This document shows, piece after piece, positions 4,799 through 64,000 of a DNA stretch of 64,000 nucleotides. Position numbers and translations under genes: made by a program. Position 1 is the first letter of the stretch. Every line of letters begins with the position of its first letter. The notes below the pieces were generated by a model. That model did not search any database. It was not told where the DNA came from and saw nothing but the letters and a program-made list of their open reading frames with translations. The DNA is from Octopus sinensis (lineage: Eukaryota): the NCBI RefSeq assembly GCF_006345805.1, contig NW_021832273.1, forward strand, positions 62,001 through 126,000, written 5' to 3'.

Positions 4799-5760
4799 AC
4801 AGTGAAACCTCTCGAATCCGCTCCTCAAGTATTACGAAAAATAATTTTTTATTTAATTGTAAGTTAAATTAATTAACATTTTAAAATTTAAATTGTATTT
4901 TTGTGATGCGTCGTTGTGTCGGACTTTCTATTAACGAAAAAATTTCTATACTATGTTATATTTCTGACAACCCATTTATTTCTGCACCTCAAATTTCCAG
5001 GATTTTTTCTTCACGATTAAAAAGAAAATTTCTCCGACCTTAAATCAAAATCGGACCTTTTGAATAGAACTGATATCCAAAAATTAAACATAACGAGAAT
5101 TCCAAAACTCAAATTTAATGAAATTGATGTAGCGATGATAAGTTGGATTGACTTAATGGAATCTAGTGGAGCAATTCTATCAGATTCGATGTTAATTGCA
5201 AAAGCTCTTAAATTTGGAAAAAATGATCCAGAATTTAAAGCAAGTCGTGGGTGGGTAGAAAAGTTTAAATTACGAAATGGTATCAAGTTAAGAAAATTTT
5301 ATCGAGACAGTGTATCAGTAAATCATGATGAAAAATCTATTACTGATTTTAATGAAACAATCAGTTTAAAAATTGATTTTCTTTACTATTATGCGCAAAT
5401 TGTTCTGGTTCCGATAAAAGAAGGCCTGTAATGATAGGATGATTCAAAATTCCAAGGTGTTTTATAAATTTCAACATTTGAAAATATGTTACCTACACCC
5501 ATTCCAAAAAGGCATGGATAAACCGTGAAATTTTCAACAAGTGGCTCAATGATTTTGATTGTGAACTTGCGAAGAAAAAAAGAAAAATTCTACTTGCAAT
5601 AGATCGATTCCCATCTCATCAAATTATTGTCACGTTAAACTCTATTGAAATTCTTTTTTTGCCTCCTAGAACTTCCTCGGTCTTACAACCAATGGATCAA
5701 GGAATTATAAAATGCTTTAAGCCAGGATTTGAAAACAAATGATATAATCTAAAAGGTTGA
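4799..5760 (+). mobile_element. pogo/Tigger-like transposon remnant
   Basis: Left end TA-CAGTGAAACCTC; ORF 5060-5431 has a CENP-B-type HTH (FKASRGWVEKFKLR); DDE motif FLPP..SSVLQPMDQGIIKCFK near 5660-5720. Confidence 0.85.
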
Positions 5761-14346: not shown

Positions 14347-15088
14347 TTAGGATTTATTAGTCAAATCCTTAGGATTAATGATAGTGACACTGTCAGGCAA
14401 CAATTTTTTAGGTCCCTTGACGCCAGTTGGGTCATGTGGCTTCATAATAGTGACTTGTATACCGATGACACCTACAAATATGAATAGTCATTACCTGATT
14501 TCATCTGAATCCCTGTCACAGCCCTGTCCAAATAGTAGTTGGGAGCATCCCCGGAGTGAATCAAATAACCGTCCACAAATTTAGAACACCTGGCCCTCTG
14601 ACCGCGAAGTTTTCCGGACACTTTGACCTCAACTCCGTTTGCACCCGCCCCCATGCATAACTTGATAGTCGAATGGGCTGCCCTCCTCACCGCCAACCCA
14701 CTTATCAGCTTGTAACGAATAGACTCCACCTGTGCCACTGCACTAAGCCCTTTATCTTGAAGACGTTCGACAGATATCTTGACTAACTAACAAATAGAGT
14801 ACTTCGATTTGATCTGTGGGGAATCCAAAGCGAGAAGATATCAGTCCTTTCATTTCTCTAATCTTCAATCCCCGATCAGCAGCGATTTGCTGAGGGCGAG
14901 TGGCCATTAGGACAATTTCAATCTTCTTTGGATGATGACGAATGGAGACATCCGATAATCCCTCTTCACGGAATATTCTCATCATTGTTGACTTTAGTTC
15001 AGTTCTTAGTAGACCTTCGGCCACAAACTAGTGATATTAAAATATTTGATACTCGTTTCTTCATCGAGAGATTGTCTTGTCCGTACAT
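14347..15088 (-). CDS. RPS3: 40S ribosomal protein S3, 4 exons (introns 15028-15052, 14778-14802, 14472-14494)
   Basis: The spliced 669-nt frame gives [17 protein letters not shown]...[19 protein letters not shown]...[20 protein letters not shown]...HDPTG.KGPKK.LPD.V.I..PKD. Confidence 0.97.
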
Positions 15089-27467: not shown

Positions 27468-28165
27468 TCACTGCTTACCGAAACCAGAAAATCCCATGAT
27501 TTTGGCGACATCGGGTTCCTCAATTTCATCGGGGGCATTGACCGTGCGTTTACCAAAGGAGGAGAAGCCGAGGACAGAAGCAATATACGCCCCATCTGCA
27601 TCAACTTCCACTGCTCTCTTCTTCTTGTCCTTCATCTCCTTCCTCCTCTCCTTCCTATTCTCCTTCCTCTTCTCCTTCTCCTCTAACAACACTGCCAGTC
27701 GTTCATGGATGTCGTACTCGGGGACATGCCTCGACATCCGATTGGCCTCGATTCGCTCACGCACTTGGGAGACGGTCGACTTTTCCACCTTCATCGACAT
27801 TCCCAGGTTCTTCTGGTCTGCAAAGGTCACATTTGAGGAATACGCTTTTTTCCGTTGATGTGGTCGAGGTAGTTGGTCGAGTCCTTTATCAGGCAGTCAC
27901 AGACCTCGCAAAAATATCTGCGTGTTTCACTTTTAGTACCCTGGTTGGGAAGAGGTGGGTGCCGAGGCTGTCACCATACGGATTTTCCCTAATTTGGAGT
28001 CCAAATCAGGCTGTTAGGGTCAGTCATGTTCATTACCTTCAAATCTCTTTGCTTTAGGGATTCCGCTGCTGTTTTCTCTGGCTTTTTTGTGTTTGTTTTG
28101 CTTAAATATTTTGCGTATTCAGATAGACTTTTTGTGTGTTTTAAAGTGTAGTTTTTATCAGCCAT
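27468..28165 (-). CDS. ZMAT2: Zinc finger matrin-type protein 2 / SNU23, 4 exons (introns 28011-28036, 27918-27939, 27818-27843)
   Basis: The spliced 624-nt frame gives [13 protein letters not shown]...[40 protein letters not shown]...MGFSGFG. Confidence 0.95.
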
Positions 28166-32564: not shown

Positions 32565-32850
32565 GGTGTCTTTTTTTAGCGGGATTGGGACAAAATTCTT
32601 TGGCGTCGATTTTCAACTGACTTGAACCACTCTTCGACCAACACAGACTGGCTTGTTTCCGTTCCGCCTGTCAGCCATACTCAGGCTCTTGGCTGAATGT
32701 ATTCCCTTCTCCGCTTTTAATAAATCTTAGTTTGAGGCTGAGAGGTGAGCGTTGTGCGGGACTGAAAAGACAGGAATGCTGAAGGTCCTTATCTAACCTC
32801 TACTAACAGCTTCTTTTTAAATAAATATTTTTCTTCAATCATTTCCAGTT
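32565..32850 (+). mobile_element. CRE fragment followed by a family-A LINE 3' UTR
   Basis: LFDQHRLACFRSACQPYSGSWLNVFP is CRE; GAGAGGTGAGCG...GAAAAGACAGGAATGCTGAAGGTCC...CTAACAGC matches 58021-58092. Confidence 0.75.
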
Positions 32851-33049
32851 TTCCGACAAATTTCAAATACAGAGCTTTTTATTTTTGATATAAAAATGCA
32901 GAAATCAGACTTTTTCGTTGTTCGGAGAAATTGGCAATTAACATACAGACCTGAATTCACAAATCAAATTTTCTATTTATAAGGGCTGCAAATTTTTTTT
33001 ATATAGCGTAATGAAATTAAAAAATGTAAGAATTTATTAACTACTTAAT

Positions 33050-36080: not shown

Positions 36081-36569
36081 AGCACTCTTTTGACATACCT
36101 TGTTGTCCGTTACATTATTTGGTCGATCTTAATTTTTTTATATAATTGGATTCAGAAGGGATAATTCGGGATGTAGTTTCTTTTAATGGTTAAATTATCT
36201 GAAATTTCATCATTTTGTAATATTTGCGAGTTTATTCTTTCAATATGTTTACATCGCTTATTTGAAATCTTCTAATTTATCTTTATTCATTGAATTTCAC
36301 CTTATTTTTGATAGAAAGTTCTATTCTTTATATTCTTACGTCAAACTTTTATTTATTTGTTCACGGATTTGGCGATCTGGTATTTTAGCGCCCTAAAATC
36401 TAAAATGATCAATTTCTACAAAATTTTAATCATTATTGTTATATTTTTTCTATTTCTAAACTTTTTTTAAACTGAACATGAATTTAATTATTGTTATATT
36501 ATTTTTATAAATTATTATGTCACAGGCCTAGGGTGTTACCGAGCCTAGGTGGTTATACTTTTGGACTTT

Positions 36570-39385
36570 TATTGTAAAGAACAAGAGACTGGTACAGAAA
36601 TATTTTTGACGTCTATACAACAAGATGGTTGCTCGAGGCACTCGAACTCTTCTGAGAAACGTCTATAGCTGTCCGGGAAAAGCTGGGCGGTTACTAGTCC
36701 TGATCGATAAACAGGTCGGTTACTTGAGATCTTCTATGGAAAGACCGGATAGATTTCTCAGTGAGCTGCATCGGTATTTTGTCGTGGCCTGGTGGGTTGC
36801 CTTTTGACGAACGGATGGCCCAGGTCACCTCTGGAGTGGTGATCGGGTGATGTTCCGACGACAGTGCTGCGGTGGTGGCTCCGACTCCGTGCCTTGCGGC
36901 GTTATCGGATTGGTTTCCTGGATAATAGCCAGGTGTTCTGCGAAAATGTTCGGGATTTCTTGTAGCGAAGCGGACATACCAGATTTATTGCACAGCCTCG
37001 GGGGTGAGGATTTTCCTTCAAGGTTAGCCACTTTGCGGAAACAGTCCCAGAAATTTGGGTTTCTGTAGTCTAAGTTTTGACAAGCCTTCTGCCATTTCCT
37101 GGCTGTTTCCAGCTTTGTCACGACTTGGACTTCATAGCCAATTTTTGAGATCATGTTTTTAAGTCTCCCCCTGTCAGTGGGGTCAACACAGCGTTTGAGT
37201 TTGTTTCTCAGCCGCTTTCTCTCGTTGAGGAGGAGTTTCACTTTCGTGCTTGGAGTGGATCTTCGTGGGCGGTCAGCACATGGCACTGTTCCGTACGATG
37301 TTAAATAGAAGAATGGTTTATTTAATACAATAGCTCCAAAAGAAAAGTGGCCGAGGAATTAGAGCTTACGATGTTAAATAATGGAGCATGAAATTGGTTA
37401 ACTCATCGCTTGCATAGTCGATGTCGCTGGCAGTGTTATAGCCAGTAGGGCGAGTGTTCACATGTGGGAAAGCACTCATGGAGCTTCTGTAGTGTCGCCA
37501 GTTGATCCTTGAGAGACTGTAGCGTGTGGATATGCGTTCTTGTTTAACAGTGCTAGTGTGAATTTTGATTTTGATTGTTTCGCTTGTGACACGGAAGGTG
37601 ATCGCTGCCGATATCGTCAAGCACTGTAGGCTTTTCCATAATGTTAGCGATCGAGTGAGAATAAATGCACAGGCATAGGTTGTCTTCGCCGAAGGGCGAT
37701 TGGTGTTCGGGTCTTCAGATGTTCTCACGAAAACACCAAGTTTGTCAGTGATCTTCTTCAGTGTTCGACATCCAAACGCCGTATGCTTCGAGTTTAAGTT
37801 TCCGATAAGAAGGCAGTGAGCGATGTTTGAGAAGAAATCGTCAATCAGACTGGTGCATGGCGGAAGATATTTGCAGTATATTCCACCGACCTTTAGCCTG
37901 AAAGATTCGGTTTTCACCTCAAGGGGGAGAAATTCACATAGTGTCCCCTCGATGATAGTGAGGTTACGGACTTGGAGTTTTTCGCAGTAGAAGATGCTCG
38001 AGCCAGTCCCAGGCGTAGAGCTGACCGGTAGCCTGGGAGCTGGTAAGAGTCATCTTCCTTGAGCTTCGACTCGTTGACGATAATAATGTCTGGATGGCCG
38101 CTGTTCACCATCTCAACGAAGTCGTGATGCCGTCTCTTGATAGATCGGGCATTCACAGCGATTATATTGATAGTGGCTATGTTGCTGAATTGTTCCCTTC
38201 TAGAAGGAGCTCTTACAGAATATTCATGTCCACTCAAAGTTTGGTCAGGGCTCCTACACAACGGCGGAAGAATTCCAGTAGGGCATCTCTGTTGTGTAGG
38301 TCATGATCCGAGTGGGGACCTCGTTGTGGCAAAGCTTTGTCATGGCGGGTTTCTGCTTTCTTATGGGGGACAGCCGAGCGGACGACTTGTGTGTTTTGGA
38401 CCTCGAGCTTGTGAGTGTGCTGGAGACCGGCGACGTCTGAATATAGACATCGACTTTGGACGGACTTGAGGGAGACCCTTTTGTCCAGACTGATTCTGTG
38501 GGATTGGCTTTTACCCAGCGGACTGGGCTTTTGGCTTGTGGGTTCTTCGCAACCCTTGAGGCTGCTGTTGCTGCTTTAGCAGACGGACATCCACCGTAGC
38601 ATGCCAAGTGCCCAGTGTTCTTGCAGTTAATGCAAGTTTTTGCAGCTGGGACGCTCGGTATCGCCTTCGAACTCGGGCAGTTTTGGTGCCTGTGTTCTTT
38701 ACCGCAGAGGAGACAACGGAGTTTGGGGGCTTGTGCCATTCGCAGCGGATATGGCTGAAGCCCGCAATTATTCCAAAACGGATGAGGGTGTTGGCCTCGG
38801 CTCTGGAATCCAGCGTGAGTCTGCCGACAGGCATGTCGGTTCCATTGGGAGAGAATCTTTCGAACTTGAAGTCCGATTCTAGACTTTCTCTCAGGTGGAG
38901 GTTAAGATCCTCTGCCGAGATCCAATGAGGGATTCCTTTAAGGACCAAGACTGAGGCTTTCTCAGCTACTGAGGCAAGTTTATGGCCGCCTTCGCCAAAC
39001 ATATTCGATTGAGACAGCTCTGCTTTGAAAGCAGCAGCATCCTCGGGGGATCGGAATTTTAGGATGAACGTGCCGGACTTCTGCAAAGTTATCCGGGCTT
39101 TGGAAGCAGTTGGCGACTTGGATAGGAGGTCTTGATCCTCTTGATCTTTCCAAGTGCCGGGTTTTCGATACTCAAAGTATATGTGAGGCTTGAGGTGTTA
39201 GGCTCAGTTTTCGTCTGATGGGATTGGGTCTCACTGTGTTTTTGAGGCACAGTGAGACTTCGGAGGTTCTGTGGGATCTTCAGCTTTGATGGGTTCGCAA
39301 AAAGGCTGTGGCTTTATCGCTGTTCGTTTTTGAACTTTGGAGCAAGCTTTAACTGATGAGAGATTTTGATTTTTCTTGACCATGA
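36570..39385 (-). mobile_element. Family-B LINE: gag-like ORF1, APE and linker, RT core deleted
   Basis: ORF1 is closely similar to 58197-59464; it continues into APE (NARSIK..DIIIVNESKL, IGNLNSKH) and the linker (W..AC..LD...PNFW), then jumps to the C-terminus/3' UTR. Confidence 0.9.
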
Positions 39386-43491: not shown

Positions 43492-44903
43492 TAGGGCAAC
43501 CAATTGCAATTTTTTGCAATTAAATATAATTTAATTAAAATTCGATAAATAATAAAGTAATGAATAGACATTAATTTTAATTATATTTTTATTCGATTTA
43601 AATTTGCAATTTTTTGCAATTTTTTGTAGTCATTTTACAATTTTTTGCAATTTTTTTAAATTAAAAAAAAAATTTTTTTATTAAAAAATAATATAATTAT
43701 AAGTAAAAGATTATTAAAACGTGTTTTAGTTGTTTGTTGTAATGGGTAAAAGGACAGTGTCACAGAAAATTTCATTTTATGCAAAGAAATTCCCCGAGTT
43801 TGTTATTGACAGTGAAGGGAATTTATTTTGCTCCAATTGCTCAACTGTTGTACGGTGTGACACAAAATTTTTTGTTGATGCGCACCGTTCTTCAAAAAAA
43901 CATTTAAAAGCACACAGTATTTCTTTGAATTTAAATTTATAGAATGGACAAATTCATCTCAGAGTTCACAAACATTTCTTTCGGCGATAACGGATACTCG
44001 AAAGGATTGGGGGATCAAAGTAACACAAGCGTTTTTGGAGGCAAACATACCAATTTATAAAATCAGACATCCTTCCCTCATACGGCTTTTTGAGCAGGAA
44101 ACATATCCTTTGCCATCTGAATCATCTTGCAGGTTAAATGTTAAAGAAATATCAAAATATAAAATTAATACCATTCAGACTCATTTACTGTTGTTTTTTT
44201 AAGTTATTCAATGTTTTCACGAATCGGAAATCCACCCGAAGTTGTGGTTACAAGATGGGGAAGCTGGCTAAAAGCAGCAAAATATTACTCCCAGAATCTT
44301 CCAGAAATTATTAAAATCGTATCTGAATTTGAAGGAGATGGAGTTTTAATACAAAATGTTTTAGTTTTTAATTATTTTAGGCAAAAAAATCAGTGAATAA
44401 TCCTACGTTGTTTCCAAGCTTAACCCAAATCAGTTCAAATTATTTGGGATTAATTGAAATGATTTCAAATACTGAATTGCTTGATTACTCCATTGCAACA
44501 GCTTATGGTGATCTAAACACCCTAGACTTTACATCAGATCCATGCGACATAAAATCCTATATATCAAAAAAGCTTGAGAAATCAGGAATACTAAGTATTC
44601 TTGAATTCTCAAATAAGAATCTATCGCCAGAAGTTTATTCACATCTCAGAAAATGTAGCGCAAGTTCAGCATCTATCGAAAGGGCAATATCTCTTTTGAC
44701 GAAAATTCTTAGTAAAGAGAGGAACTTTAAACCTGAAAATGTTCAGGAATATTTGATTTCCTATTACAATAAATAATTTCGTTAATTTTTTGCATAATGT
44801 AATGTTTACAATTAAAAAAAATTATTTTTGCAATTTTTTACAATTTTTAAAATTCATTTTTGCAATTTTTTTTATTAAAAAGTGCAATTTTTTGGTTGCC
44901 CTA
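43492..44903 (+). mobile_element. hAT with CGGBP-like zinc finger, internally deleted
   Basis: TIR TAGGGCAACCA / TGGTTGCCCTA; 8-bp TSD GTAATCAC at 43484-43491 and 44904-44911; LFCSNC..H..SKKH, TRWGSWL and SASIERAIS motifs. Confidence 0.95.
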
Positions 44904-45371: not shown

Positions 45372-48300
45372 TTGTTTCCTGGGTTCTTGTGGGGCAAAAT
45401 TTATCCCGAAAGGAACTGGAAAAAGAAGAAAGAAAAAAGAGCCATCGAACAAATAGAGTGCGTAGAAACAGTCTCCAAGATGCAAGAACACAACACTACG
45501 CACATTATCCCTGTGAGAGTTGGTCTGGTGTGTTCTTCGTGCGGTTGTGGCAATGCACGCAAGTACGGGCTTTTCTGCTCGATTTGCGGGAACTTTTTCC
45601 ACCTCGGATGTGTAAGGATGTCCCGGCAGGCTGCATCCTCACTCAGTTTATGGAACTGCAATGTATGTATGGGCTTTGACCGGAAGACCCAGGCGAAAAT
45701 ATCGAATGAACCTGTCGTCTCTAGCGAGCCGTTGGATTTCGACAATACGGATTCTCTCCTGCTTTTCTTGTCTGAGCAAAGGAAGGCCAACAAGATTCCA
45801 CTTAAGATCCCGAGACCCGTCCGGATCCCTGCAGCTATATGCCTGGCTTCCGCTATTGACGATGCACTCACGTCCAACGACCAAGAGGCCTGGCTCAAAC
45901 TCTTCGGTTTCGCCCCGCTTGCACTTGGCATACCTTACACTGAGTCAAAGGAGCCACATCGGAACACTAGAGAAAGTTCCATGAATGGAAACTCACTTTC
46001 CTCAAAAATGAAGAAAAATATCCACGATTTCCAATCACGATCTATTAACAAAACGGAATTTTCAAAAGCAAAACATCCGGACGCCGATCATACGCTCTTT
46101 CGGAATTGCCCAGATACACTCGGAGAGAGAGTAAATCGTAAACTTCTTGAAGGAGACGTCCGAGCGGCGTTGCGGGTCGTTTCCAGCGACGATAACGTCC
46201 TGGCTCCAACACCTGAAGTCCTCGAGCAGATCAGACGAAAACATCCATGTCCGCCGGAAGATTACCGCCTATTCGTGCTCCCGGGAGATATGCCAAGGAC
46301 AACTATTACTGAAGGCGAAGTGCGCGCAGCATTTCGTCGTTCGCGGCGAGCAGCAGTGGAGGTCTCGATGGCTTGCGACCAGGTCACATCAAGGATCTCA
46401 CGGCTGGGGCTACTGCGGAGGCAGGCCGCAACCTTGTCAAATCAATCACAAGACTGGTTATGCGTATTTTGAACGGGGATGATCTGGACGCAAGGGAGCT
46501 TCTTTTCAGCGCACATCTACTTGGCTTCAAAAAACCCGAAGGTGGGGCCCGCACTATCGCGGTCGGGAACTACTTCAGAAGGCTAACAGCTAAAATTGCA
46601 TGCAGTCTTGTCTGTCCGAGAATATCTGAAGAATTCTCCCCCTTCCAACTCGGAGTTGGGGTAAAGAACGGATGTGAGGCGGCGGTGCATGCCGCAAGGT
46701 GCTTTTTCACACAGAAAAACGAACAAAATCCAAAAATGGGAGTCAAGCTTGACATCTGCAATGCCTTTAATTCACTGCGGAGGGATCAAATTTTCGAGAC
46801 TGTAAGCAAACGAGCCCCGGAACTCATTCCACTCGTCTACCTGGCCTACGGAACCAAGTCTTCACTCGTCTTTGCGGACAAGATTATCTATTCGGAGACT
46901 GGAGTCCAGCAAGGGGACCCGCTTGGTCCACTTCTCTTTGCGTTGGCAATCGACGAAACTGTACGTTCCATCAGCGCGGAACTAAACCTCTGGTATCTTG
47001 ATGATGCCACGATTGGAGGGCCGTGGGGAAAAGTTTTTGACGTTCTGTCACAAGCCGTGCCTGTACTACGAAAACTCGGACTTGATATAAATATAAAGAA
47101 ATCGGAGCTGATAAATATCACATACTCGGAAAGTGATTTTATCAACGTGGTCAAGTCTTTCAAATCGATATTACCTGGGATTACTGTCTTACCTCGGGAG
47201 AGGGCATACTTTCTTGGGTGCCCACTTGGCGAAAAGGAACTGCGGTGCCATCTGCTGGAAAAAAACAAGGGTCTTTCTAGAGTTACAGAGAAACTTTCCT
47301 TACTCAATGCTCATACTGCATTCTTCCTTTTGAAAAATAGCATTGGCTTGCCTAAACTCCAATACGCTCTCCGTTGTTCTCCCTGCTTGGAACATCGAGA
47401 CATTCTACAGACACTGGATAGGACTTTGAGAAGTTCAGCTGAATCGCTCTTGAACATCCACTTTGACGAACCTGGTTGGAATCAATGCAAGCTTCCTACA
47501 CGCATCGGAGGAACGGGTCTCAGGTCGGCGCTGGATTTCGCATTCCCGGCATATCTGTCATCGCTTTCAAGCTGCAGTCATCTCGTCCAGGAAATCCTAC
47601 GTAACACTACTGGACTCTCCTTGGACACAGTATTTGACAAGGTTTGCTTGCAATGGAAGGAAGCCGGACTTTCAATCCCAGATGATGTCTCGAGACAGAA
47701 TTGTTGGGACGCAATATCATGCAAGGCTGTCGTTGATGACCTGAAGCGGGAGTTGAACCAACACCGGCTCGTCTGTTTGCTATCCGGGGCACAGCACGGG
47801 AGTGGTGCATGGCTCCACGCATTTCGATGCAGTTCATTCGGTACGCTTATGGACGACGATTGTGTGAGAATCGGTGTTGCACAACGCTTGGGTCTTGACG
47901 TCTGTCAGGAACACAGATGCCGGTGTGGAGGAATAGTCGATTCCAAAGGACTACACCCTTTGTCTTGCAAGAGGAGTGCAGGTCGCGCTCCCCGCCATGC
48001 CGCACTCAACGACATAATACGACGGGCCCTCGAGAGCGCAGGATTTCCAGCACACCTGGAACCCATCGGGCTTGACCGGGGAGATGGCAGAAGGCCCGAT
48101 GGGATAACTCTTTTCCCGTACTCCCAGGGAAAATCACTCGCATGGGATGCGACGTGCGTAGGCACGTTCTCCCAGTCCATGATTCTTCGGAATATTCATT
48201 CGCCCGGTTGGGCTGCTAATGCAGCAGAAAAGGCGAAGATATCTAAGTATTTGGAGATCGGAAAACTTTTCCGTTTTGTCCCAATCTCGATAGAGACGTC

Positions 48301-48519
48301 TGGTGTAGTGGGATCCAAAACCGCGGAATTTCTCAAGGAAATTGGGGCGATGCTGGCTAAACGAAGGAGGGACAGTCGCGAGGGGTATTGGCTTCGCCAA
48401 CGTATCGGAATTGCAGTTCTTCGTGGCAACACGCACGCGATACTGGCTGCCGGGTTGTAAACTACGAAACAAAGTTAAAGATTGCTAAATTTTTTTTTTT
48501 TAATTCGAAAAACTAACGT
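45372..48519 (+). mobile_element. Near-complete CRE-type retrotransposon: PHD finger, RT and restriction-like endonuclease; one frameshift near 46337
   Basis: C4HC3 motif; QQGDPLGP, WYLDD; CRCG..HPLSC..RH..RPDG..WD; TSD GATTGTAAAGA at 45361-45371 and 48520-48530. Confidence 0.95.
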
Positions 48520-53585: not shown

Positions 53586-53868
53586 TGAATGAATGAAGTT
53601 TATTGTAATTAACAGAGAAAGAGAAAGTGACAGGAATTAAGGACGGTGATAGGACGAGACTGATGCAAAGGCAACTGAACTCTTCTGAGCTTGCGTCCAA
53701 TTCATCTGTCGTGAGCCAGAGTTAATGGTGACTATGTTGCTGAATTGCTCCCTTCTAGCAGGAGCTCTTGCAGCATATCGATATCCACTCCAAGTAGGGT
53801 CAGGGCTCCTACACAACAGCGGAAGCATTCCAGTTGGGAATCTCTGTTGTGTAGGTCCTGATCCGAGT
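53586..53868 (-). mobile_element. Family-B gag-only derivative, 3' 283 bp, (TTCA)3 tail
   Basis: Near-identical reverse complement of about 59326-59610. Confidence 0.95.
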
Positions 53869-53881
53869 CGAATTTTTCCTA

Positions 53882-54046
53882 ATGTCTGGACGTGGTAAAG
53901 GTGGCAAAGGAGGAAAGAGTGGTGCAAAACGATTTCGAAAGATATTAATTGACAATATACAAGGAATTACTAAGCCAGCAATAAGAAGACTATGTCGAAG
54001 AGGGGGTGTTCAAAGAATTTCTGGAAAAATTCATGCAATTACAAGA
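53882..54046 (+). pseudogene. H4: Divergent histone H4 5' fragment (about 55 codons) fused in frame to LINE ORF1
   Basis: [48 protein letters not shown]..; AT-rich codons switch to GC-rich sequence at about 54047. Confidence 0.92.
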
Positions 54047-55366
54047 TTGGCTCGAGGAGGACCTCTTCCCAACGAAAAGGTTCCTGATGCGGACGGTTGG
54101 CATACCGTGGGGAAACCCAAACGTGTTGCCAGCCGTCCTTTTAATAGTTTAGGTACTGGGTGTGTGTCTGCGCAGGTAGATGCACACCCAAAGAAGACTG
54201 CTCGCGCCGGGGGTAGAATTACCTTCGGCGTGGTGGCTAGACTAGAAGTCTTTCCCACCAGTGGAAAGGCCTCGGTCATAAAGATCCTGGGGACGCTTGA
54301 CTCTATACAGCCATCTAGGCGGTATAGAGTCCTGAAGAGGGAGCCCACCCAATTCCTGCTTGGGTGGGAGAAGAAGGAGGACTTTTTCAGCTTTAAAGGA
54401 GAGCTGGAGAAGTCCAGCCCGTTCGGTCCTGGCATGCATCGGCTTGTCAGGATTGAACGAAAGGTAAGGCAGGTAAGAGTCCTGCTCCTCGGGGTCCCCC
54501 GGGACTTCGAGGATAATGACCTTTTAGGACACATACAGCGGGAGTACCCCAGTGCCTCTGCCCTTGCACGCTTCAAGCAGGGTAACCGCCCTCTTGAAGT
54601 GGTGGAGGTCATCCTGGGATCTCATGCGGAAGCCGAGCGCCTAGTACTTCTGGGTACTAGGATCGGCTACGTCAGGCTTCGTGCTGTCCGGCCCCGCCCG
54701 AAAGCCACCCAATGCTTTCGGTGTCAGGGGTTCGGACACATAAGCACGAAGTGTCCGGAGAAGGCGAAATGCCTAATCTGCGGTGGGGAGCATGGTCGCA
54801 AGACATGCCCCTCACCATCTATGGTGAGGCAGTGTGTCAACTGTGGTAAGTTAGGACACACTGCCAACTTCAAGGGTTGTCGTAAGTTCAAGGAGGCAAC
54901 CCGACAGGTTGGTGGGGATGTAATCCCGAAGGTAAGTCGCCCCCCTAGCGTCGCGGCCCCCGCGCAACCAACCGGCAAACAGGTAAAGCAGGCCAAACCT
55001 CCCAAGTCCGCTTGGGTGGCGAGGCCTGTGAAGCCTGCAAGCCACCGCACCCCTAGCGTCGCGGCCTCAGCGCCAAAACCTGGCAAACAAGCAAAGCAGG
55101 CCAAACCTCCCAAGTCCGCTTGCGTGGCGAAGCCTGTGATGCCTGCAAGCCACCGCACCCCCAGCGTCGCGGCCCCCGCTCCACAACCTGGCAAACAGGC
55201 AAAGCAGGCCAAACCTCCCAAGTCCGCTTGGGTGGCGAAGCCTGCGAGCCACATTGCTAGCGGGTCGGTACCGCCGTCGCCGACAAAGCTGGCAAAGCGG
55301 GTGAAAGCATCCGAGTCAGCTCGGATGCCGGAAGCCTGCAATGCCCTCCGAGTCGGCTACAGGTGA
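53882..55366 (+). CDS. H4::ORF1 (gag-like, 3 CCHC-type knuckles) of LINE family A
   Basis: [43 protein letters not shown]; open for 494 aa. Confidence 0.9.
54944..55255 (+). repeat. 108-bp (36-aa) tandem repeat, about 2.9 copies, in ORF1
   Basis: Units start at 54944, 55052 and 55160: [28 protein letters not shown]. Confidence 0.92.
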
Positions 55367-57998
55367 CACCGCCCAGCAAAACCTGGGGCCGAAAAGGCTT
55401 CCTCCATACGTGGAGATGCCATTGCACTCACCCCCTTGCGAGCGTGTGCCGCAGGACAGTGTTAGTCCTGCGGACATCCTGGTGGTCAACGAAACAAAGT
55501 TAAAGCAGGATCGGTACGTAGTTGATGGCTACAACTGCTGTCACATACCCTGGAAACAGGGGTCAACATGTGGCACTGGAACTAGCCTCTTATACAAGCC
55601 GTACCTTGCTCTCCGGAGCTCAGGTTTATGTTCTTGTAGCCTATGTGAATTCCTCCAAGTGAGGATTCGCATAGGTAATTTAACATTTTACCTAGGGGCG
55701 ATGTATTCGAAGAACTTTACGGCGTGTTCTTGGCACGTACGGGAGTTCTTTGGAAAGCATCCGAAGGCGATGGTCGTTGGGGACCTGAATGCCAAGCACC
55801 AAGAGCTCGGTTTCAGGGTAACCAACGCGCATGGTTTGGCTCTCAAGACGCTGGTTGAAGACCTCGGGTTGGAAATCAGATCTTCAAGCGAGCCAAACCA
55901 CATCGATTCGCGGGGAGGACAAGACTGGCTAGGCCTTGCTCTGGTCAGCCCCGGGATGCTAAATTGGGTTAGTAACACAATCTTATTGCCTGATATTGGG
56001 AGCGACCATCTGCCTCTATTGCACGAACTCCGTGAGCCAGTTCCTCAAAGGGCCCCAGGATACTTTGACCTCCGGTCCGGTTCCTGGGCCAACCTGGAGA
56101 GGTTCATGGCCAGCAGGTTGCCCTCACTCCTGGTGGGGAATACCTGCGCCAACATACGAGAGTTGGAGGCGTTAGATAATGGAATCAATGCTGCCCTGTC
56201 TGATTATATGCGAGATAATTTCAAACAGAACCCAGTACAGGGCCAGGCACATTCCACGCTCCCGTACCGGGTGCTAAATAAAATTAGATTCAAGCGCCGG
56301 CTGTCCAGACTGCGGGACAAATGCGTCTACCAGGAGAACCGTGTTTGGTTTCGCGGCTGGATCAGCCGGATTCAGAGGGAGATCCGGAGGGAAATCCGTG
56401 AACACGAAAGTTCACGGTGGGAGCGGGCCTGCCAAAGAGTGGACCCGCGCTTTCCGGACTTCTGGAAACAACTGAAGAGCCTGTCGGGGAGAGGGGAGGC
56501 AAAGTCAGTGCGCCTTAAGCGCTCTGATGGAACCCTCGTCTCGGACCCGGTTGAGGTGGCTGATATATTTTCAACCCACCTCAACAACATCTCGGGAACT
56601 GACGGAAGTCAGTTCGTAGAGACGTCGTCTTTTGTTACTATCCAGGAGGTATTGTCTTGGGACAAGCGCTGCCAGCTGGACATATCAAGGGTCGATGCAG
56701 GCGAAGTTTCCGAAAGGGAGATCCTGGCAGCGATCTCCCGAAGTAAGAACACCGCGGCGGGGCTAGATCGGATCCCTATGTCCATCTTCAAAAAGGCCCC
56801 GCCGTTGTTGATCACGGCCTTACAGGTTTTGTTTAGCGGGAGCTTGCGACTTGGGATGATTCCTTCCAGGTGGAAAGTGGCTGAGGTAATCCTCATTGGA
56901 AAACCTGGGAAGCCTCATGAAGTCCCCGGGGGATATATGCCCATTTCCTTGCTTCCCGCTATATCTAAAATCCTAGAAAGGATCATGCACCGAAGGCTCC
57001 TGGAGGAGCTGACGGTGGTTGACGCCCTCCCGGAGTTCCAATGGGGCTTCAGGGAGGGTCGTTCATGTGGAGACTGCTTGTGGAAGGTGTCTTCCGAAAT
57101 GAAGAACGCCCTCCAGAAAAGGGAGTGTGGTATGTTAGTTAGTCTTGACATAGAAAAGGCCTTCGACTCGGTGTGGCACGACGGCCTGCGGAGTTCCCTC
57201 GCCACGTGTGGGGTTTCTCCGTGTCTAAGGCGCTGGCTGTCGGGGTTCCTCGAATCTCGCGGTCAGGTCGTGCGACACCAGGGGGTCTTTTCTAAAGTCG
57301 CAACAGTCTTTCGCGGGGTCCCTCAGGGTTCTGTGCTGAGTCCCACACTGTTTAATATCTTTATGGCCTCTGCACCTATGCCAGTCAATGCTCGTACTGG
57401 AATGGTGATCTATGCAGACGACATTATCCTCTGGGATCAGTCGATGAAACCAGAGTGTGCGTGTCGTAGGCTACAGGTTGCTGTGGATGAACTTGTAAAC
57501 TGGTGTGGGAGTAGGGGTCTAAAGATGTGTGCGGACAAGTGCAGTGTCCTTAAAGTCTGTAAAAGGACGAGGGGTTACACTAATTTTATCCCTAGGTTAT
57601 CACTGGACGGGTCAGCGATCGCTGTAGTTGATCGGACGATCTACTTGGGCATGGTCTTCAAGCAGTCAGGTAAGTTCGATGATCACATTGCACGTACTAA
57701 AATGCGTGCAATGCAGCGATTAGGCGCGTTGCGTGCTTTCCACTTGAGGAGAGGTGCCTGGTTCCGTGTGTTCAACGCCATGGTGTTACCCGTGTTAACC
57801 TATGGCGTGCACGCTTGGCACTTCTGCGAGGACAGGGAGAAGTACGTTGACGCGCTTAAGAAAGTAAGAAGACGAGCCATCCGGCTAGCCTATGGCTTAG
57901 GATGGCGTGATGAGCTCTCCAACGCCCAGGAATTGTCCCTCAAAGGCCTTCCTGAGGTCCTGGAGAAGATAATGACTGGGTGGCAGGTAAGACGGTAA
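55341..57998 (+). CDS. ORF2 (APE endonuclease + RT, no RNase H) of LINE family A, uninterrupted
   Basis: [55 protein letters not shown]; 3' UTR runs to 58132. Confidence 0.95.
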
Positions 57999-58143
57999 GT
58001 CCTAACCTGTGGTTGTGTAGAGAGGCGAGCGTGTGTGCTGGACCGAAAAGGCAGGAATGCCGAAGGTCTCCTTATGTTACCTCACTAACAGCCTCTCTAA
58101 CTAATTATTTAAAATGAAAATTTTCCTTCCCAGAACTTGCAAA

Positions 58144-59618
58144 AACAGAATTGTTGTGAGAATCCAGCTGCATGGTAAAGGAAAATAAAGAAAAAATGGT
58201 CAAGAATAAACAAAATCTCGCATCAATCAAAGCTTGCTCCAAAGTTCAAAAACGAACAGCGGCCAAGCCACAGCCCTTTTGCGAACCTGAATATCCCACC
58301 GAACATCCGAACCCTACTGTGGCTCAAAAACACAGTGAGACCCAATTCTATCAGACGACAACTGAGGCTAACAGCTCAAACCTCACATATTCTCTGAGTA
58401 TCGAAAACTCGGCACTTGGAAAGATCAAGAGGTTTAACCTCCTCTCCAAGTCTCCAACTGCTTCCAAAGCCCGGATAACCTTACAGAAGTCCGGCACCTT
58501 CATTCTAAAATTCAGTTCGCCAGAGGATGCTGCTGCGTTCAAAGCAGAGCTGACTAAATCGAATATGTTTGGCGAAGGCGGCCATAAACTTGCCTCAATA
58601 GCTGAGAAGGCCTCAGTCTTGGTCCTTAAAGGAATCCCTCATTGGATCTCGACAGAGGATCTTAACCTCCACTTGAGAGAAAGTCTAGAATCGGACTTCA
58701 AGTTCGAAAGATTCTCTCGCAATGGAACCGACATGCCTATCGGCAGACTCACGCTGGATTCCAGAGCCGAGGCCAGCACCCTCATCCGCTTTGGAATAAC
58801 TGCGGGCTTCAGCCATATCCGCTGCGAATGGCACAAGCCCTCAGCAACGAGATGCTTCCGTTGCAATCAGTTTGGACATACGTCCTACAGATGCTCCGAA
58901 AAACTCCGTTGTCTCCTCTGCGGTAAAGAACACAGGCACCAAAACTGCCCGAGTTCCAAGCCAAAACCGAATGTCCCAGCTGCAAAAACTTGCATTAATT
59001 GCAAGAACACTGGGCACTTGGCGTGCTACGGTGGATGTCCATCTGCCAAAGCAGCAACAGCAGCCTCAAGGGCTGCGAAGAGCCCACAGACAAAAAGCCC
59101 AGTACGCTGGGTGAAAGCCGAACCGATAAAATCAGTCTGGACAAAAGCGGCTCCCCGAAGTCCGTCCAAAGTCGATGTCTCTACTCAGACGTCGCCGGCC
59201 CCCAGCACACTCACAAACTCGAAGACAACCACTAATGAGTGCCATAACTCAGAAGTGGTCCGCTCGGCTGTCCCTCATAAGAGGAGAAAAACCCACCGTG
59301 ACAAAGCTTTGTCACAAAGAGGTCCCCACTCGGATCAGGACCTACACAACAGAGATTCCCAACTGGAATGCTTCCGCTGTTGTGTAGGAGCCCTGACCCT
59401 ACTTGGAGTGGATATGGATATGCTGCAAGAGCTCCTGCTAGAAGGGAGCAATTCAGCAACATAGCCACCATTAACTCTGGCTCACGACAGATGAATTGGA
59501 CGCAAGCTCAGAAGAGTTCAGTTGTCTTTGCATCAGTCTCGTCCTATCACCGTCCTTAATTCCTGTCACTTTCTCTCTCTCTGTTAATTACAATAAACTT
59601 CATTCATTCATTCATTCA
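58144..59618 (+). mobile_element. Family-B gag-only non-autonomous LINE, intact ORF1 (58172-59464), (TTCA)5 tail
   Basis: CFRCNQFGHTSYRC, CLLCGKEHRHQNC, CINCKNTGHLACYGGC; ORF2 is deleted about 10 nt after the ORF1 stop. Confidence 0.95.
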
Positions 59619-59629
59619 GAACTTGCAAA

Positions 59630-61314
59630 TGGTGTTTCGTGCAAGCTCAGTTCTGCAAGATGAAGTATTTATTGGATACAATACAAATCAAACGAATTGG
59701 CCCCTTGTGTCCCTATTCCTGACAACCTCGCTAGAGTCACTCATACATCGGGCAGCAGTTCACACGACAAAACAAATTGAAAGTCTGGACCAGCTCGTTA
59801 GGAATCTCATCAACACTTCTTTGGAGAAGTTTTCCAGGAAAAAGTTCATTAAACACTCTGGTGGTGGGACTCATGAACTCGACGACACAGTAGTGAGTCT
59901 CCTGAAAGAAAAGGCAAGATACCAGAAGAGGCTACGCAGATGTTTTGACCCAACAGACTGCACACGCCTACGAGCAATGATTTCCTCTCTTAAAAAGAGG
60001 ATCGACAAAAGGTCTAAAGAAAACATTGACTCAGCTTGGAGATTGGAATGTTCTAAGCTTAATCGAAGACACCCAAGTTTCTGGAAGGCATATAATCGCC
60101 TAAAGGAAACGGAATGCAAAGGAGATGAAATCAATTTAACCACAGAAAATGGCTATGCCATCAACCGAGACGATGTACCTGACGCTTTACGTCAACAACT
60201 GGCGAAAATTCAAGATGTCGACCCGAGCTGTTTTGTCCCGACAGATATAATGGACGAGAAAAAGAGGGCAATAGCCTCTGCGAAAATGTCCCCTGGTCGA
60301 CTTTGTCACGCAATCACCCTGGACGAAACCCTACTAGCAATTAAAAGATGCAAGGACAACGCCTGTGGAAACTGCTTTGACCAACTGGAAACGCAAATCT
60401 CGAGGGCCCTTACACACAAGATGGGGATGACAGCTGTTTGTCTGGACATTTCAAAGGCGTTCGACAGCGTTTGGCACCTAGGCCTCCTGGAAAGGATCAT
60501 CAGTATCCATCCGGGGCAAAGGATTGTCAAATGGCTAGAGAATTTCTTACACATGCGAAAGTCTTTTATCAGATGTGGTAACCGGACCTCGGATACAATC
60601 AATCTAAGGAGGGGAGTGCCTCAAGGGTCGGTCCTGAGCCCTCTACTTTTCAACTTATACGTTGCCGACATCCCGAAACCAGTAAATTCGGAGTTGGAAA
60701 AGGCTGAGGGAATATGTAGCGAGGGTTGAGTCTTGGGCAATGGAGAAAGCCCTCTCTATAGCACGAGACAAGTCTACCATCACGTGGATTTCTAAAACTC
60801 GGAAAGGAAGAGAACCACTTCTGGAGACAATGGGACTAAGAATCTCTGACGACCTACGCTACCTTGGGGTAACGATCGGGGCTGACGGATCGTTCCTTAA
60901 GTTCGTGGAATCTAGAAGAAGGAAATGTTCGGGGATCCTGAGAAGCCTTATACGCTTCCATCTCTCCCCAGACACCTTTCTCTTCATCTATAAGGCGACT
61001 GTAGAACCAGTCCTTATCTATGGACATGAAGGTTGGTACCCTACAGACGAGAGAAATCGCATAATCACCAAACTGGAGAAAACAAGGCGCTTTGCGATTA
61101 AACTGGCGTATAAGCTACGGCTTGATCAGGATCTCCCCAGAGAGCTAGACGAACAAACTCAAAACATTCGGCAAGTCCTCTGCTCATTGCAAAGGGCATG
61201 AGAAGTGAAAAGGAAAGCAAGGAGGAGGCATTCGGTGTCTCGATTTTAAATAAAACCTTTTCTAATAACTCTTCTCTTTTGGTTGCTAAGTTAATAAAAT
61301 CTGTTCGTTCGTTC
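59630..61314 (+). mobile_element. Family-C LINE, 5'-truncated with internal deletions, (TTCG)n tail
   Basis: Linker, [11 protein letters not shown] and [10 protein letters not shown] are present; the YADD region is missing; C-terminal ORF 60740-61201. Confidence 0.9.
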
Positions 61315-61325
61315 GAACTTGCAAA

Positions 61326-61613
61326 CTAGCCTATATGCTAAATCCATGGGAGCCTGTCCCAAGCTGGGCGGAGAGCAAGTCTCCAGAGCTACGGCAGGCC
61401 ATCGAGGCTTCTATCCGAACTTTTCGGAAACGCTCTAAAGTGGCTGACCTATTCATCGATCGTGGAGAATAGCAGGTGTCCCTGCTCATAGACAGACAAA
61501 GCGGACGAACCATGGAAGAGCTCGAATGCCCAAAGCAATCGTCTCGTCAAAATTATTTTCCGCACTAAGTTTCTGTCTCGTTTCTTCTTTCTTACAATAA
61601 AATTCTTCATTCA
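61326..61613 (+). mobile_element. Family-D LINE 3' end (B-related UTR)
   Basis: IEASIRTFRKRSKVADLFIDR parallels EKSIRSFHRRSQVTDLFIDQ at 36.7 kb; GAAGAGCTC motif, TACAATAAAA, (TTCA)2. Confidence 0.8.
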
Positions 61614-61624
61614 GAACTTGCAAA

Positions 61625-61886
61625 GATGTTCTACTGGAGTGCTTCCGCGATTATGTAGGAGCCCTGAAGATATCTGGAGTGGATATGAATATGCTGCAAG
61701 AGCTCCTGCTAGAAGGAAGCAATTTAGCTACATAGCCACTATTAACTCTGGCTCATGACAGATGAATTGGACGCAAGCTCAGAAGAGTTCAGTTGCCTTG
61801 GCATCAGTCTCGTCCTATCACCGTCCTTAATTCCTGTCACTTTCCCCCTTTCTCTGTTATTACAATAAAATTGATTGATTGATTGA
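61625..61886 (+). mobile_element. Family-B gag-only derivative, 3' 260 bp, (TTGA)4 tail
   Basis: Aligns to about 59355-59618 including the deletion junction. Confidence 0.93.
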
Positions 61887-61897
61887 GAACTTGCAAA

Positions 61898-63950
61898 GAG
61901 CTAGACGAACAAACTCAAAACATTCGGCAAGTCCTCTGCTCATTGCAAAGGGCATGAGAAGTGAAAAGGAAAGCAAGGAGGAGGCTTTCGGTGTCTCGAT
62001 TTTAATAAAACCTTTTCATATAACTAGGGCAACCAGAAATATGACCTTAAAAAAGTTAAATATGACCGTAAAATATATGACTTTATGACTTTAAAATTCT
62101 AAAATATAACTTAAAAATATTAAAATATGACCTAAAAAATCAAAATATGACCTATCGAATTTTGATTTTTAGATATTCTGAATTCGAAAATATGAAAAAA
62201 TTAAACATTTCAATCAATGAATTTATTATAATATTGCATCATATAATATTTAATATTTTCTGGCTTGAAGTTTCTATCCTTTTCGAGCAATTTATTCAGC
62301 ATAGAAAAGCTTCTTTCTGCAGATATTGATGTTGAAGGACATTTCCATAAGTAAATAAATGTTTCTTGAGAAATACTAGAAATTCTAGCATTTTTAATAT
62401 TCGTCCATGGTAATCGTCCATTCTAGTATTACTTATCCGCTTTAAAAAATACTTGTTGATGTCACAATTATCCTCACCAAAATTAACGGAATCAATGAAT
62501 TCAATTGCATCTTTAATTGTATAAAATTTTTTTTGGCATTTTCTGATTTCATCAATAATAGGGTTGTATGAAGCCATTAACTCTGCCAGATTTTTCTCCA
62601 AATTTTCAGAGCTAACAGCATTTTTCGCATTCATCACAATCTTTCCACAATTTGGATAGGATAAGACAATTTCGCGAACTCTTGAAAGATGTCGACTATA
62701 ATATTTTGCTGCGTCCAACCAGCTGCCCCATCTTGTTAGAACAACATCAGGTGGAAGTCTAATAACTGTAAAAAGATTCCTCCGGGAGGGATTTTTTACA
62801 ATCGACATTTTGATAGACGAGATTAAGTCGTCAATATATTTATAGTGTGCTCTAATCTTTAATGCACAATTGTGCAGAAGATGAGCAAAACAAGTTATAT
62901 GAATCATTTTAATATATACATAACCTTCAATGTACTCGCTGCTAAAGTCATATAACGGGCAGCATCAGAAATAAATAATAAAAAATTTTCCCTTTTTATA
63001 TCATAAATTCGAATTGTGTCATCCACAATTCTACAAATTGCAGATGCATCACAAATTTCAATTTCCAAACAATTTAATAAATAAATTTTTCAGGACTTTC
63101 AATAGTCCCACAAAGAACGTTAACAAATTTCTGTTTATTGATTTCCGTTTCATCAACAAGTATGAATATATCTTTTCCAGAAATAATTGTTTTAAGCATT
63201 TCAATCAATTGATATTGCAAATCTGGAACTATATTTCTGCACCAACTTTCGCTGGGAACAGTAAATCCGAGATTATTAAAAAAATTAATAAATTGTGCAT
63301 TTCTTATTTTGTAAAGAGGTATATTCGCCTTCGTCATCATTTCGACTAAGCAAATTCCGAAATTTTTCTTTGCTTCAAGTTTCGGAAGAGTGTTGAGTTG
63401 CGTTTGAAATTTTGTCTGTTCCTTTTTATGCCGGGTAGTTTCCCTGTGCTGCACCACATTAAACGTTTTCGTAAAATTAACAAAAACTGAGCATTTCAAA
63501 CAAAATAAACGTCCAGCTGAATCAATCTGAAATTCAGACGGGTATCGTTTAATTATTTTATTTAACTTTTGATTGTTAGATTGCTTTTGTTTCGGCATGT
63601 AAAAATCTATAATATTTAAGCGGCCAACTACCAAAACGTGTGAAAACGTGTTATTGTCAAAATTTAAACAAAGATTAATAAAAATATATGATTTAATAAA
63701 TATAAATATGACCTAACAAAAAAAATATGACCTAAAAAAATAATATGACCTAACGGCATAAAATATGACCTATAAGACCTAAAAAAATTAATAAAACTAT
63801 TAAAAAATATAATAATAGTTTATTAATTATAGAAATAACATCAATATGATCAATAAAAAATAATATGACTTATATGACTTTTGGTTGCCCTACATATAAC
63901 CCTTCTCTTTCGGTTGCTAAGTCAATAAAATCTGTTCATTCATTCATTCA
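61898..63950 (+). mobile_element. Family-C 3' end (about 180 bp) split by a hAT insertion, (TTCA)4 tail
   Basis: 61898-62024 plus 63901-63950 rejoin to match 61141-61314. Confidence 0.92.
62025..63892 (-). mobile_element. hAT with CGGBP-like zinc finger (same TIR as 43.5 kb), disrupted transposase
   Basis: TIR TAGGGCAACCA; TSD CATATAAC at 62017-62024 and 63893-63900; RLFCLKC..H.ETTRH, LVDETE, TCFAHLLHN and TRWGSWL motifs; ATATGACC subterminal repeats. Confidence 0.95.
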
Positions 63951-63972
63951 GAACTTGCAAATTTTGTGGATA

Positions 63973-64000
63973 ATGGCACCTAAAGTTAGCATAAAGGCCC
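63973..64000 (+). CDS. Start of a possible host ORF MAPKVSIKA (histone H2B-like), cut off by the window end
   Basis: Only 9 codons are visible; a MAPK start is typical of many H2B proteins but also of RPL23a and H1. Confidence 0.35.

Follow-up and report, generated by a model that had tools for sequence, protein, structure and literature searches.

Introduction

Site-specific long interspersed nuclear elements (LINEs) serve as models of the coexistence of mobile elements with their hosts and as templates for programmable gene insertion. In Drosophila, R1 elements are reported to form tandem arrays that are separated by short duplications of ribosomal DNA (rDNA), and the elements HeT-A, TART and TAHRE (Jockey clade) build mixed head-to-tail arrays at telomeres, in one orientation and with variable 5'-truncation. 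Integration at or near a transcription start is known for Ty3, a long terminal repeat (LTR) element, and for TRE5 and TRE3 of Dictyostelium, which are tethered to RNA polymerase III (Pol III) factors at tRNA genes, and HAL1-type elements are LINE derivatives that retain only the first open reading frame (ORF1). LINEs that target small-RNA genes can form arrays composed of an element and a piece of the gene (PMC4640811). The subject of this report is a head-to-tail array of LINE copies, designated A, B, C, D, B' and C', that lies at the right end of a 64,000 nt stretch of Octopus sinensis DNA (contig NW_021832273.1, nt 62,001–126,000; hereafter the window, with positions counted from its first base). 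Each copy is followed by the same 11-mer, GAACTTGCAAA, and the last of these runs into what is probably the start of a histone H2B gene.

Results

The 11-mer GAACTTGCAAA is found six times in the window, on the plus strand only (starts at nt 58133, 59619, 61315, 61614, 61887 and 63951), while the expected count is 0.15 (mean of shuffled sequences; maximum 1). Allowing one mismatch yields just two extra sites in the window, both unrelated. Ranked by frequency among the 11-mers of the window, with low-complexity strings excluded, it is in the top three, and the others that reach such numbers (six or seven copies) belong to the subterminal repeats of two DNA transposons. The layout is identical at all six junctions, as seen by reading the sequence and from a junction table: the 3' end of an element is followed by a short tail, the 11-mer and then the first base of the next element. 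The order of the copies is backed by self-BLAST and by tblastn searches with the array open reading frames (ORFs). The original prediction had described six plus-strand copies (A, B, C, D, B, C), each ending in a tail and the identical 11-mer, and this was borne out at every junction. The features of the array and its two flanks are as follows (UTR, untranslated region; RT, reverse transcriptase).

nt 53586–53868, minus strand: off-array, 5'-truncated B copy with a (TTCA)3 tail at nt 53586–53597; 98.6% identical to B nt 59328–59610
nt 53882–54049, plus strand: histone H4 head, 56 codons (tblastn E 6e-14; PDB H4 E 1.5e-20)
nt 54050–58132, plus strand: element A, 54.6% GC, with ORF1, ORF2 and 3' UTR, ending in ...ttccttccca (Pfam, CCHC regular expression, alignment)
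nt 58133–58143, plus strand: 11-bp target-site duplication, copy 1 (sequence count)
nt 58144–59618, plus strand: element B with complete 5' end and (TTCA)5 tail (self-BLAST, tblastn, CCHC regular expression; the O. sinensis copy L007 starts at the same base)
nt 59619–59629, plus strand: 11-bp duplication, copy 2 (sequence count)
nt 59630–61314, plus strand: element C, 5'-truncated ORF2 with (TTCG)n tail (Pfam RVT_1, 6.6e-16; tblastn to A ORF2)
nt 61315–61325, plus strand: 11-bp duplication, copy 3 (sequence count)
nt 61326–61613, plus strand: element D, last 288 bp of a fourth family, (TTCA)2 tail (sequence reading, alignment)
nt 61614–61624, plus strand: 11-bp duplication, copy 4 (sequence count)
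nt 61625–61886, plus strand: element B', 262-bp 3' fragment of the B family, (TTGA)4 tail; 88.9% identical to B
nt 61887–61897, plus strand: 11-bp duplication, copy 5 (sequence count)
nt 61898–63950, plus strand: element C', 3' fragment of the C family of about 180 bp, (TTCA)4 tail (self-BLAST, 96% and 85% to C)
nt 63951–63961, plus strand: 11-bp duplication, copy 6, running on into the native downstream leader (sequence)
nt 63962–64000, plus strand: remainder of the presumed H2B leader, TTTTGTGGATA, followed by the initial nine codons, MAPKVSIKA, up to the end of the window (comparison with H2B N-termini)

With six identical 11-mers and exact boundaries, both the insertion point and the length of the duplication are constant. 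The array copies have five distinct 5' end points and their four 3' UTRs do not align, which indicates independent insertion events. The hallmarks of LINEs are all seen, namely the lack of LTRs, variable 5' truncation, a 3' tail and a target-site duplication. Repeated insertion at one site is the sole reading that fits all six junctions, and confidence in it is high. A 20-mer, GAACTTGCAAATTTTGTGGA, had no match in viral contigs and only chance matches in metagenomic phage or prokaryotic coding DNA; among genome contigs there was one chance match, in a metagenome-assembled genome of Pirellulaceae.

Copies that lie off the array help to separate target from element. The tail of the minus-strand B copy is followed on its 3' side by ACAGTTCATATT, part of a truncated, AT-rich RT element, and not by the 11-mer. 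At a second O. sinensis locus (L007), a B copy with 94.7% DNA identity begins at the exact first base of array B (AACAG) and is preceded by ctgctcgaatc instead of the 11-mer. An A-like 3' UTR near 32.74–32.85 kb is likewise without the exact 11-mer. The proposal that the 11-mer lies outside the elements therefore held at all three places. Since 5'-truncated copies cannot bring their own 5' leader, the 11-mer is not an element leader, and the continuity of the last 11-mer with unique downstream sequence supports its origin from the target. The best interpretation is a target-site duplication that arises anew with every insertion.

The flank of the A-like 3' UTR (nt 32737–32875), GACAAATTTCAAATACAGA, bears a weak likeness to the 11-mer followed by the opening bases of B. 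It may be a decayed version of that junction or a product of chance; the former idea was rejected, the similarity being weak and reached by 18 of 500 shuffles. A longer relative of the array elements is present on the minus strand (nt 36565–39383), with a B-like ORF1 (85% DNA identity), remnants of an apurinic/apyrimidinic endonuclease (APE) domain, decayed and located at 37.6–38.1 kb, and a D-like 3' end. No 11-mer follows this copy. In its own orientation, (TTGA)3 stands ahead of it, which gives the impression of stacking on another tail.

Element A is the only array copy in which both ORFs are present, and its reading frames run without stops for about 4 kb. ORF1 is 5'-truncated and has three CCHC knuckles; it lacks its own start codon, and the frame opens at the H4 ATG (nt 53882–55366). 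ORF2 (nt 55341–57998, 885 aa) specifies an APE and an RT domain, and RNase H was not found by Pfam. The Pfam domains of A are zf-CCHC, Exo_endo_phos_2 (E 5.6e-9) and RVT_1 (E 1.6e-36), and the catalytic residues of the nuclease (Y122, D148, N150, D222 and H223) are invariant in the alignment. An ORF1 with three CCHC motifs and an ORF2 lacking RNase H are the features of the I group (Jockey/R1-type). An AlphaFold2 model of the A endonuclease (EN; predicted local distance difference test score 79) returned the TRAS1 EN as the closest fold (template modelling score 0.81, E 1.3e-12), followed by the L1 EN, with the R1Bm EN ranking 18th; this fold match is a structural hint of R1-clade membership. 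A phmmer search of PDB with the nuclease domain gave no match, and neither did exact look-ups of A ORF2 and B ORF1. Homologues of A ORF2 share at most 31% identity, the best (P0001) at that value, and the occurrence of P0001 in two different flanks shows that it is not site-specific. Within ORF1, downstream of the zinc knuckles, there are about three tandem copies of a 108-bp unit (nt 54938–55247, about 90% identical), which encode a Pro/Lys/Ala-rich segment.

Element B carries an intact ORF1 (nt 58172–59464, 430 aa, three CCHC motifs) that is followed directly by the 3' UTR. It has no ORF2 and so would be non-autonomous, having to borrow the ORF2 of another element. The ORF1-to-UTR junction is common to three B copies (nt 58144–59618, 53586–53868 and 61625–61886). 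B ORF1 shares 87% identity with the uncharacterized O. sinensis protein LOC115231492 and 49% with another protein of that species; the former, a B relative, is annotated as a protein-coding gene. These matches mark the host as an octopus, O. sinensis or a near relative. Element C begins at about residue 242 of A ORF2, just past the APE domain, and shows RT motifs, an internal deletion and a frameshift. Element D consists of the last 49 codons of an ORF2 plus the 3' UTR and is related to the 3' terminus of the copy on the minus strand, at 36.57–36.79 kb (75% column identity). C' is 96% identical to C over 133 bp and is interrupted by a DNA transposon of 1868 bp (nt 62025–63892) with an 8-bp duplication, CATATAAC, and the terminal inverted repeat TAGGGCAACCA. 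This transposon, which has subterminal AATATGACCTA repeats and decayed minus-strand ORFs with a CFAHLLHN motif, is presumably hAT-like; Pfam returned no hAT match.

The ORF1 proteins of A and B are about 33% identical, and A and C share 41% identity in the RT core and about 25% elsewhere. Judged by their sequences, A, B, C and D are separate lineages. The original prediction of at least three APE-type families with different 3' UTRs is exceeded in number, there being four families with unrelated 3' UTRs, but the APE domain is seen in the array only in A, as the array copies of B, C and D are without that region.

At the right end of the array, an ATG at nt 63973 comes 11 nt (TTTTGTGGATA) after the last 11-mer, which confirms the spacing that had been reported between the 11-mer and the MAPKVSIKA start. 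The codons are ATG GCA CCT AAA GTT AGC ATA AAG GCC. A 25-mer comprising the 11-mer and the downstream leader is unique in the window, even at three mismatches. H2B proteins of gastropods start with MPPKVSSKGAKKAGK (Haliotis, Aplysia) or MAPKVSSKGAKKAGK (Pomacea); seven of the nine residues of MAPKVSIKA are identical to MAPKVSSKG of Pomacea, and MPPKVSSKG also occurs in molluscs. The pattern M[AP]PKVS.K is matched by one of the 2015 ATGs of the window (both strands), that at nt 63973, and by none in 200 composition-preserving shuffles. A search with mollusc H2B returned no octopus entry among the best 120 matches or 10 clusters.

The (TTCA)4 tail of C' and the G of the 11-mer together form CATTCAG, exactly 21 nt before the ATG. 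In a metazoan histone unit from an ENA assembly (L010), the H2B gene reads caccATTCAG, 21 nt and ATG, a spacing equal to that in the window, and has an octamer, ATTTGCAT, and a TATA-like box upstream. The distance from ATTC to ATG in the H2B gene of Haliotis rubra (L013) is 27 nt, the same as in the window, and the H4 genes of both units have CATTCAG 23–24 nt before the ATG. In sea urchins, PyCATTCPu is the classical histone cap box. Going by these relatives, the native sequence upstream of the insertion site would also have been CATTCA, and placement of the site in an H2B leader is a fair reading of the sequence. Elsewhere in the metazoan that supplied L010 (L009 and L011; ENA ERZ24894577 ctg511742c), 56-codon ORFs come in runs after H3–H2B pairs, at a spacing of about 160 bp, and have the look of a satellite within the histone region.

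At the left end of the array, the H4 head differs from canonical H4 by a one-residue deletion and about nine substitutions in the alignment, which is too many in 56 codons for a working H4. Its GC content of 37.5% is host-like, compared with 54.6% in A. The H4 head is in frame with A ORF1, giving a joint ORF of 494 aa (nt 53882–55366) from the H4 ATG. As the frame of A is open, the H4 piece had presumably already decayed when the 5' end of A was joined to it. The lack of both a start codon and an upstream 11-mer in A implies that its 5' junction involved a deletion or later rearrangement, and the young minus-strand B fragment, with its 5' end 12 nt ahead of the H4 ATG, points the same way. No further histone gene was found in the window by tblastn. 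The locus is probably a dead histone remnant, given the decay of the H4 head, its fusion to a 5'-truncated A and the absence of the upstream duplication and the promoter.

A histone cluster had been suggested because the array begins with H4. A real H4 N-terminus does lie on the same strand, 10 kb upstream of the H2B-type start, but a decayed half gene is weak evidence for an intact cluster. The wider idea of a histone target gains from the octopus host, the H2B-type start and the position of the CATTCAG box.

The approximately 50 kb around the array form a patchwork in which pieces of LINEs lie among DNA transposons and the remains of decayed genes. They include an ORF of the Tc5/pogo helix-turn-helix type (nt 5060–5431), a decayed fragment of ribosomal protein S3 on the minus strand (nt 14752–15024; PDB uS3, E 1e-13, about 50% identical), and a minus-strand ORF (nt 27468–27830) with a Lys/Glu-rich stretch and MGFSGFGK motifs that resembles a fragment of a decayed gene and gave only a weak Pfam match to DUF3752. 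Clusters of TTGCAATTTTT repeats (nt 43500–44900) are probably the subterminal repeats of another DNA transposon, and nt 45372–48460 contain another kind of retroelement, in which an ORF with a weak PHD finger precedes an RT ORF of 695 aa.

Discussion

The array is most simply explained by at least four APE-type LINE lineages (A, the ORF1-only B, C and D) having inserted serially at the same nick positions in an H2B 5' leader, a reading to which a probability of about 0.65 is given. The bottom strand would be nicked just before GAACTTGCAAA, within CATTCA|G and some 5 nt past the presumed cap site, and the top strand 11 bp further on, about 16 nt into the presumed H2B mRNA. The nicks, 11 bp apart, would be made by a sequence-specific, R1/TRAS-like APE nuclease. 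Target-primed reverse transcription would follow, and each insertion would duplicate the 11-mer and mostly leave a 5'-truncated copy. A (TTCA)n-like tail together with the duplication would rebuild CATTCA-GAACTTGCAAA, so that the site survives and stays open to further insertion; such rebuilding of the target by the tail would explain stacking instead of blocked insertion. The native H2B leader would be expected to resemble GAACTTGCAAATTTTGTGGATA. Copies elsewhere in the genome would be expected to show a tail followed by GAACTTGCAAA and TTTTGTGG, and an H2B reading frame would continue beyond nt 64000 as ...KKAGKAK...KESY..YIYKVLKQVHPDTG. The anatomy of the junctions, the types of element, the host and the H2B-like start with its spacing are observed; where the strands are nicked, how the target regenerates and whether other H2B genes serve as targets are points that we infer, and confidence in histone genes as a general target is modest. 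It is speculation that new copies entered at the left-most site and that the deletion in A ended the series; left-most entry would fit the intact ORFs of A on the left and the later DNA transposon carried by C' on the right. The broadest proposition is that the octopus harbours a guild of LINEs homing to the H2B cap site, with (TTCA)n tails that rebuild CATTCAG, and that these would be the first site-specific retrotransposons aimed at a protein-coding multigene family transcribed by RNA polymerase II (Pol II). This is held tentatively, the odds being somewhat against it.

Several observations weigh against serial insertion into an H2B leader. The evidence comes from one locus, where the downstream gene is visible for nine codons only, and the CATTCA that precedes the last 11-mer is part of the C' tail and not of native upstream sequence. 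There are at least two off-target copies of the same family (the minus-strand B copy and that at L007) against six on target, and two copies of related families are also off target (the B/D-like copy at 36.57–39.38 kb and the A-like end at 32.8 kb); strict family-wide target specificity is unproven. The 11-mer is missing upstream of A, the leftmost element. Finally, H4 and H2B are on opposite strands in two gastropod-type histone units. Unless cephalopods differ, a plus-strand H4 followed by a plus-strand H2B is not simply one intact unit, and the H4 head may not be a native neighbour.

The off-target copies would also fit a local hot spot, at which dispersed LINEs with a loose nuclease preference (e.g., TTCA/GAA-like) accumulated once a first tail plus duplication had produced a good site, histones being no general target. 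The two flanks of P0001, the closest ORF2 relative elsewhere, and the character of the window as a graveyard of transposon fragments and pseudogenes agree with this. A loose preference does not readily account for four lineages, with proteins only 25–41% identical, using the same two cut positions and the same 11-bp stagger, nor for use of the site adjoining the A tail, which is CCCA and not TTCA, and it leaves the match with the conserved position of the H2B cap box unexplained. A hot spot is judged unlikely, though it deserves to be kept in mind. Alternatively, the target could be some other repeated sequence, such as a Sm-class small RNA gene or another transposon, with MAPKVSIKA being coincidental. 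The Sm-site-like AAAUUUUGUGG directly follows the 11-mer, and APE-type site-specific LINEs are known to hit small nuclear RNA (snRNA) and ribosomal RNA genes, microsatellites and other transposons (PMC4640811, PMC3812793). Against such a target, no similar site is present elsewhere in the window, the H2B-type start is statistically unique, and an H4 fragment is nearby. Rfam was empty for nt 63930–64000 even at E 10, as for the window, and Rfam and tRNA scans of the window and the 3' flank gave no match, leaving the idea of an snRNA or spliced-leader RNA gene unsupported. A target of this kind is improbable.

Two further explanations place the origin of the repeated 11-mer elsewhere. R1-type elements are known to read through into the target sequence beside them, and the 11-mer could have been carried by the element RNAs, as a transduced 3' flank or a donor 5' leader, with the array formed by serial template switching. 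The presence of AATAAA 17–32 nt before the end of the 11-mer, which itself ends in AAA, would suit this scenario. It is very hard to reconcile with the lack of the 11-mer at the 3' end of the minus-strand B copy and at the 5' end of the other O. sinensis B copy, with the continuity of the last 11-mer and the leader, and with the inability of 5'-truncated copies to carry a 5' leader, and it is considered highly improbable. An assembly artefact, in which insertions from different histone units were joined via the shared tail and 11-mer, is hardly credible. The region is highly repetitive and junction strings common to array sites are up to 27–31 bp long; real single insertions, however, would have the native promoter and not an element tail before the 11-mer, joining via at most 15 bp of truly shared sequence is unlikely at the usual k-mer sizes, and the transposon insertion in C' has clean 8-bp duplications. 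Also rejected were a position of the 11-mer inside H4, as none of its reading frames fits H4, and a (TTCA)n microsatellite as the target, as the 5' sides show the 11-mer and not the repeat.

If insertion into the H2B leader is correct, a Pol II-transcribed, cell-cycle-regulated multigene family would be added to the list of LINE targets. It would also join rDNA as the second natural setting in which to ask how many copies of a gene its host can afford to lose, how several lineages keep one specificity and whether a target-rebuilding tail explains stacking. Under the broader proposition of a guild, a replication-dependent histone promoter might drive transcription of the inserted copies or be restored by them.

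Comparison with known systems

The ORF1-only structure of B recalls the HAL1-type elements, in that ORF1 and the 3' UTR are kept without ORF2 and several copies share that junction; B differs in having a Jockey/R1-like ORF1 and in sitting at a specific site. The array shares with HeT-A, TART and TAHRE the mixed head-to-tail stacking of 5'-truncated LINE families. Those elements are added at chromosome ends without duplications, whereas the octopus array is internal, has an 11-bp duplication at each junction and ends in a gene. A position only a few nucleotides from a transcription start, which is presumed for the array, is shared with Ty3, TRE5 and TRE3, but here the gene would be a histone gene transcribed by Pol II, and the more likely basis is sequence-specific nicking.

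The LINEs of the Tx1 clade and those with a restriction-like endonuclease (Keno, Dewa, Mutsu, Utopia, NeSL/CRE) are similar in homing to tandem, highly expressed small genes. Their targets are RNA genes or spliced-leader exons, while no Rfam family matches the array site, and Utopia, NeSL and CRE differ further in their restriction-like nuclease. R1-clade LINEs, such as R1Bm in 28S rDNA and TRAS1 and SART1 in telomeric repeats, likewise combine APE and RT domains with a CCHC-containing ORF1, and the modelled A endonuclease is closest to that of TRAS1. They also resemble the array in making precise cuts of both strands with a fixed short stagger and constant duplication, in having a multicopy target and in the sharing of one site by several lineages. 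The differences are that R1-clade elements target rDNA, telomeres or microsatellites and not, as presumed here, the leader of a Pol II histone H2B gene, and that the array has (TTCA)n tails and its families have off-target copies. A full-text literature search with terms for histones and LINE target specificity found no histone-targeting element. The mode of insertion is familiar from the R1 and Tx1 clades; the presumed class of target is new, and a target that is rebuilt by the element's own tail may be new as well.

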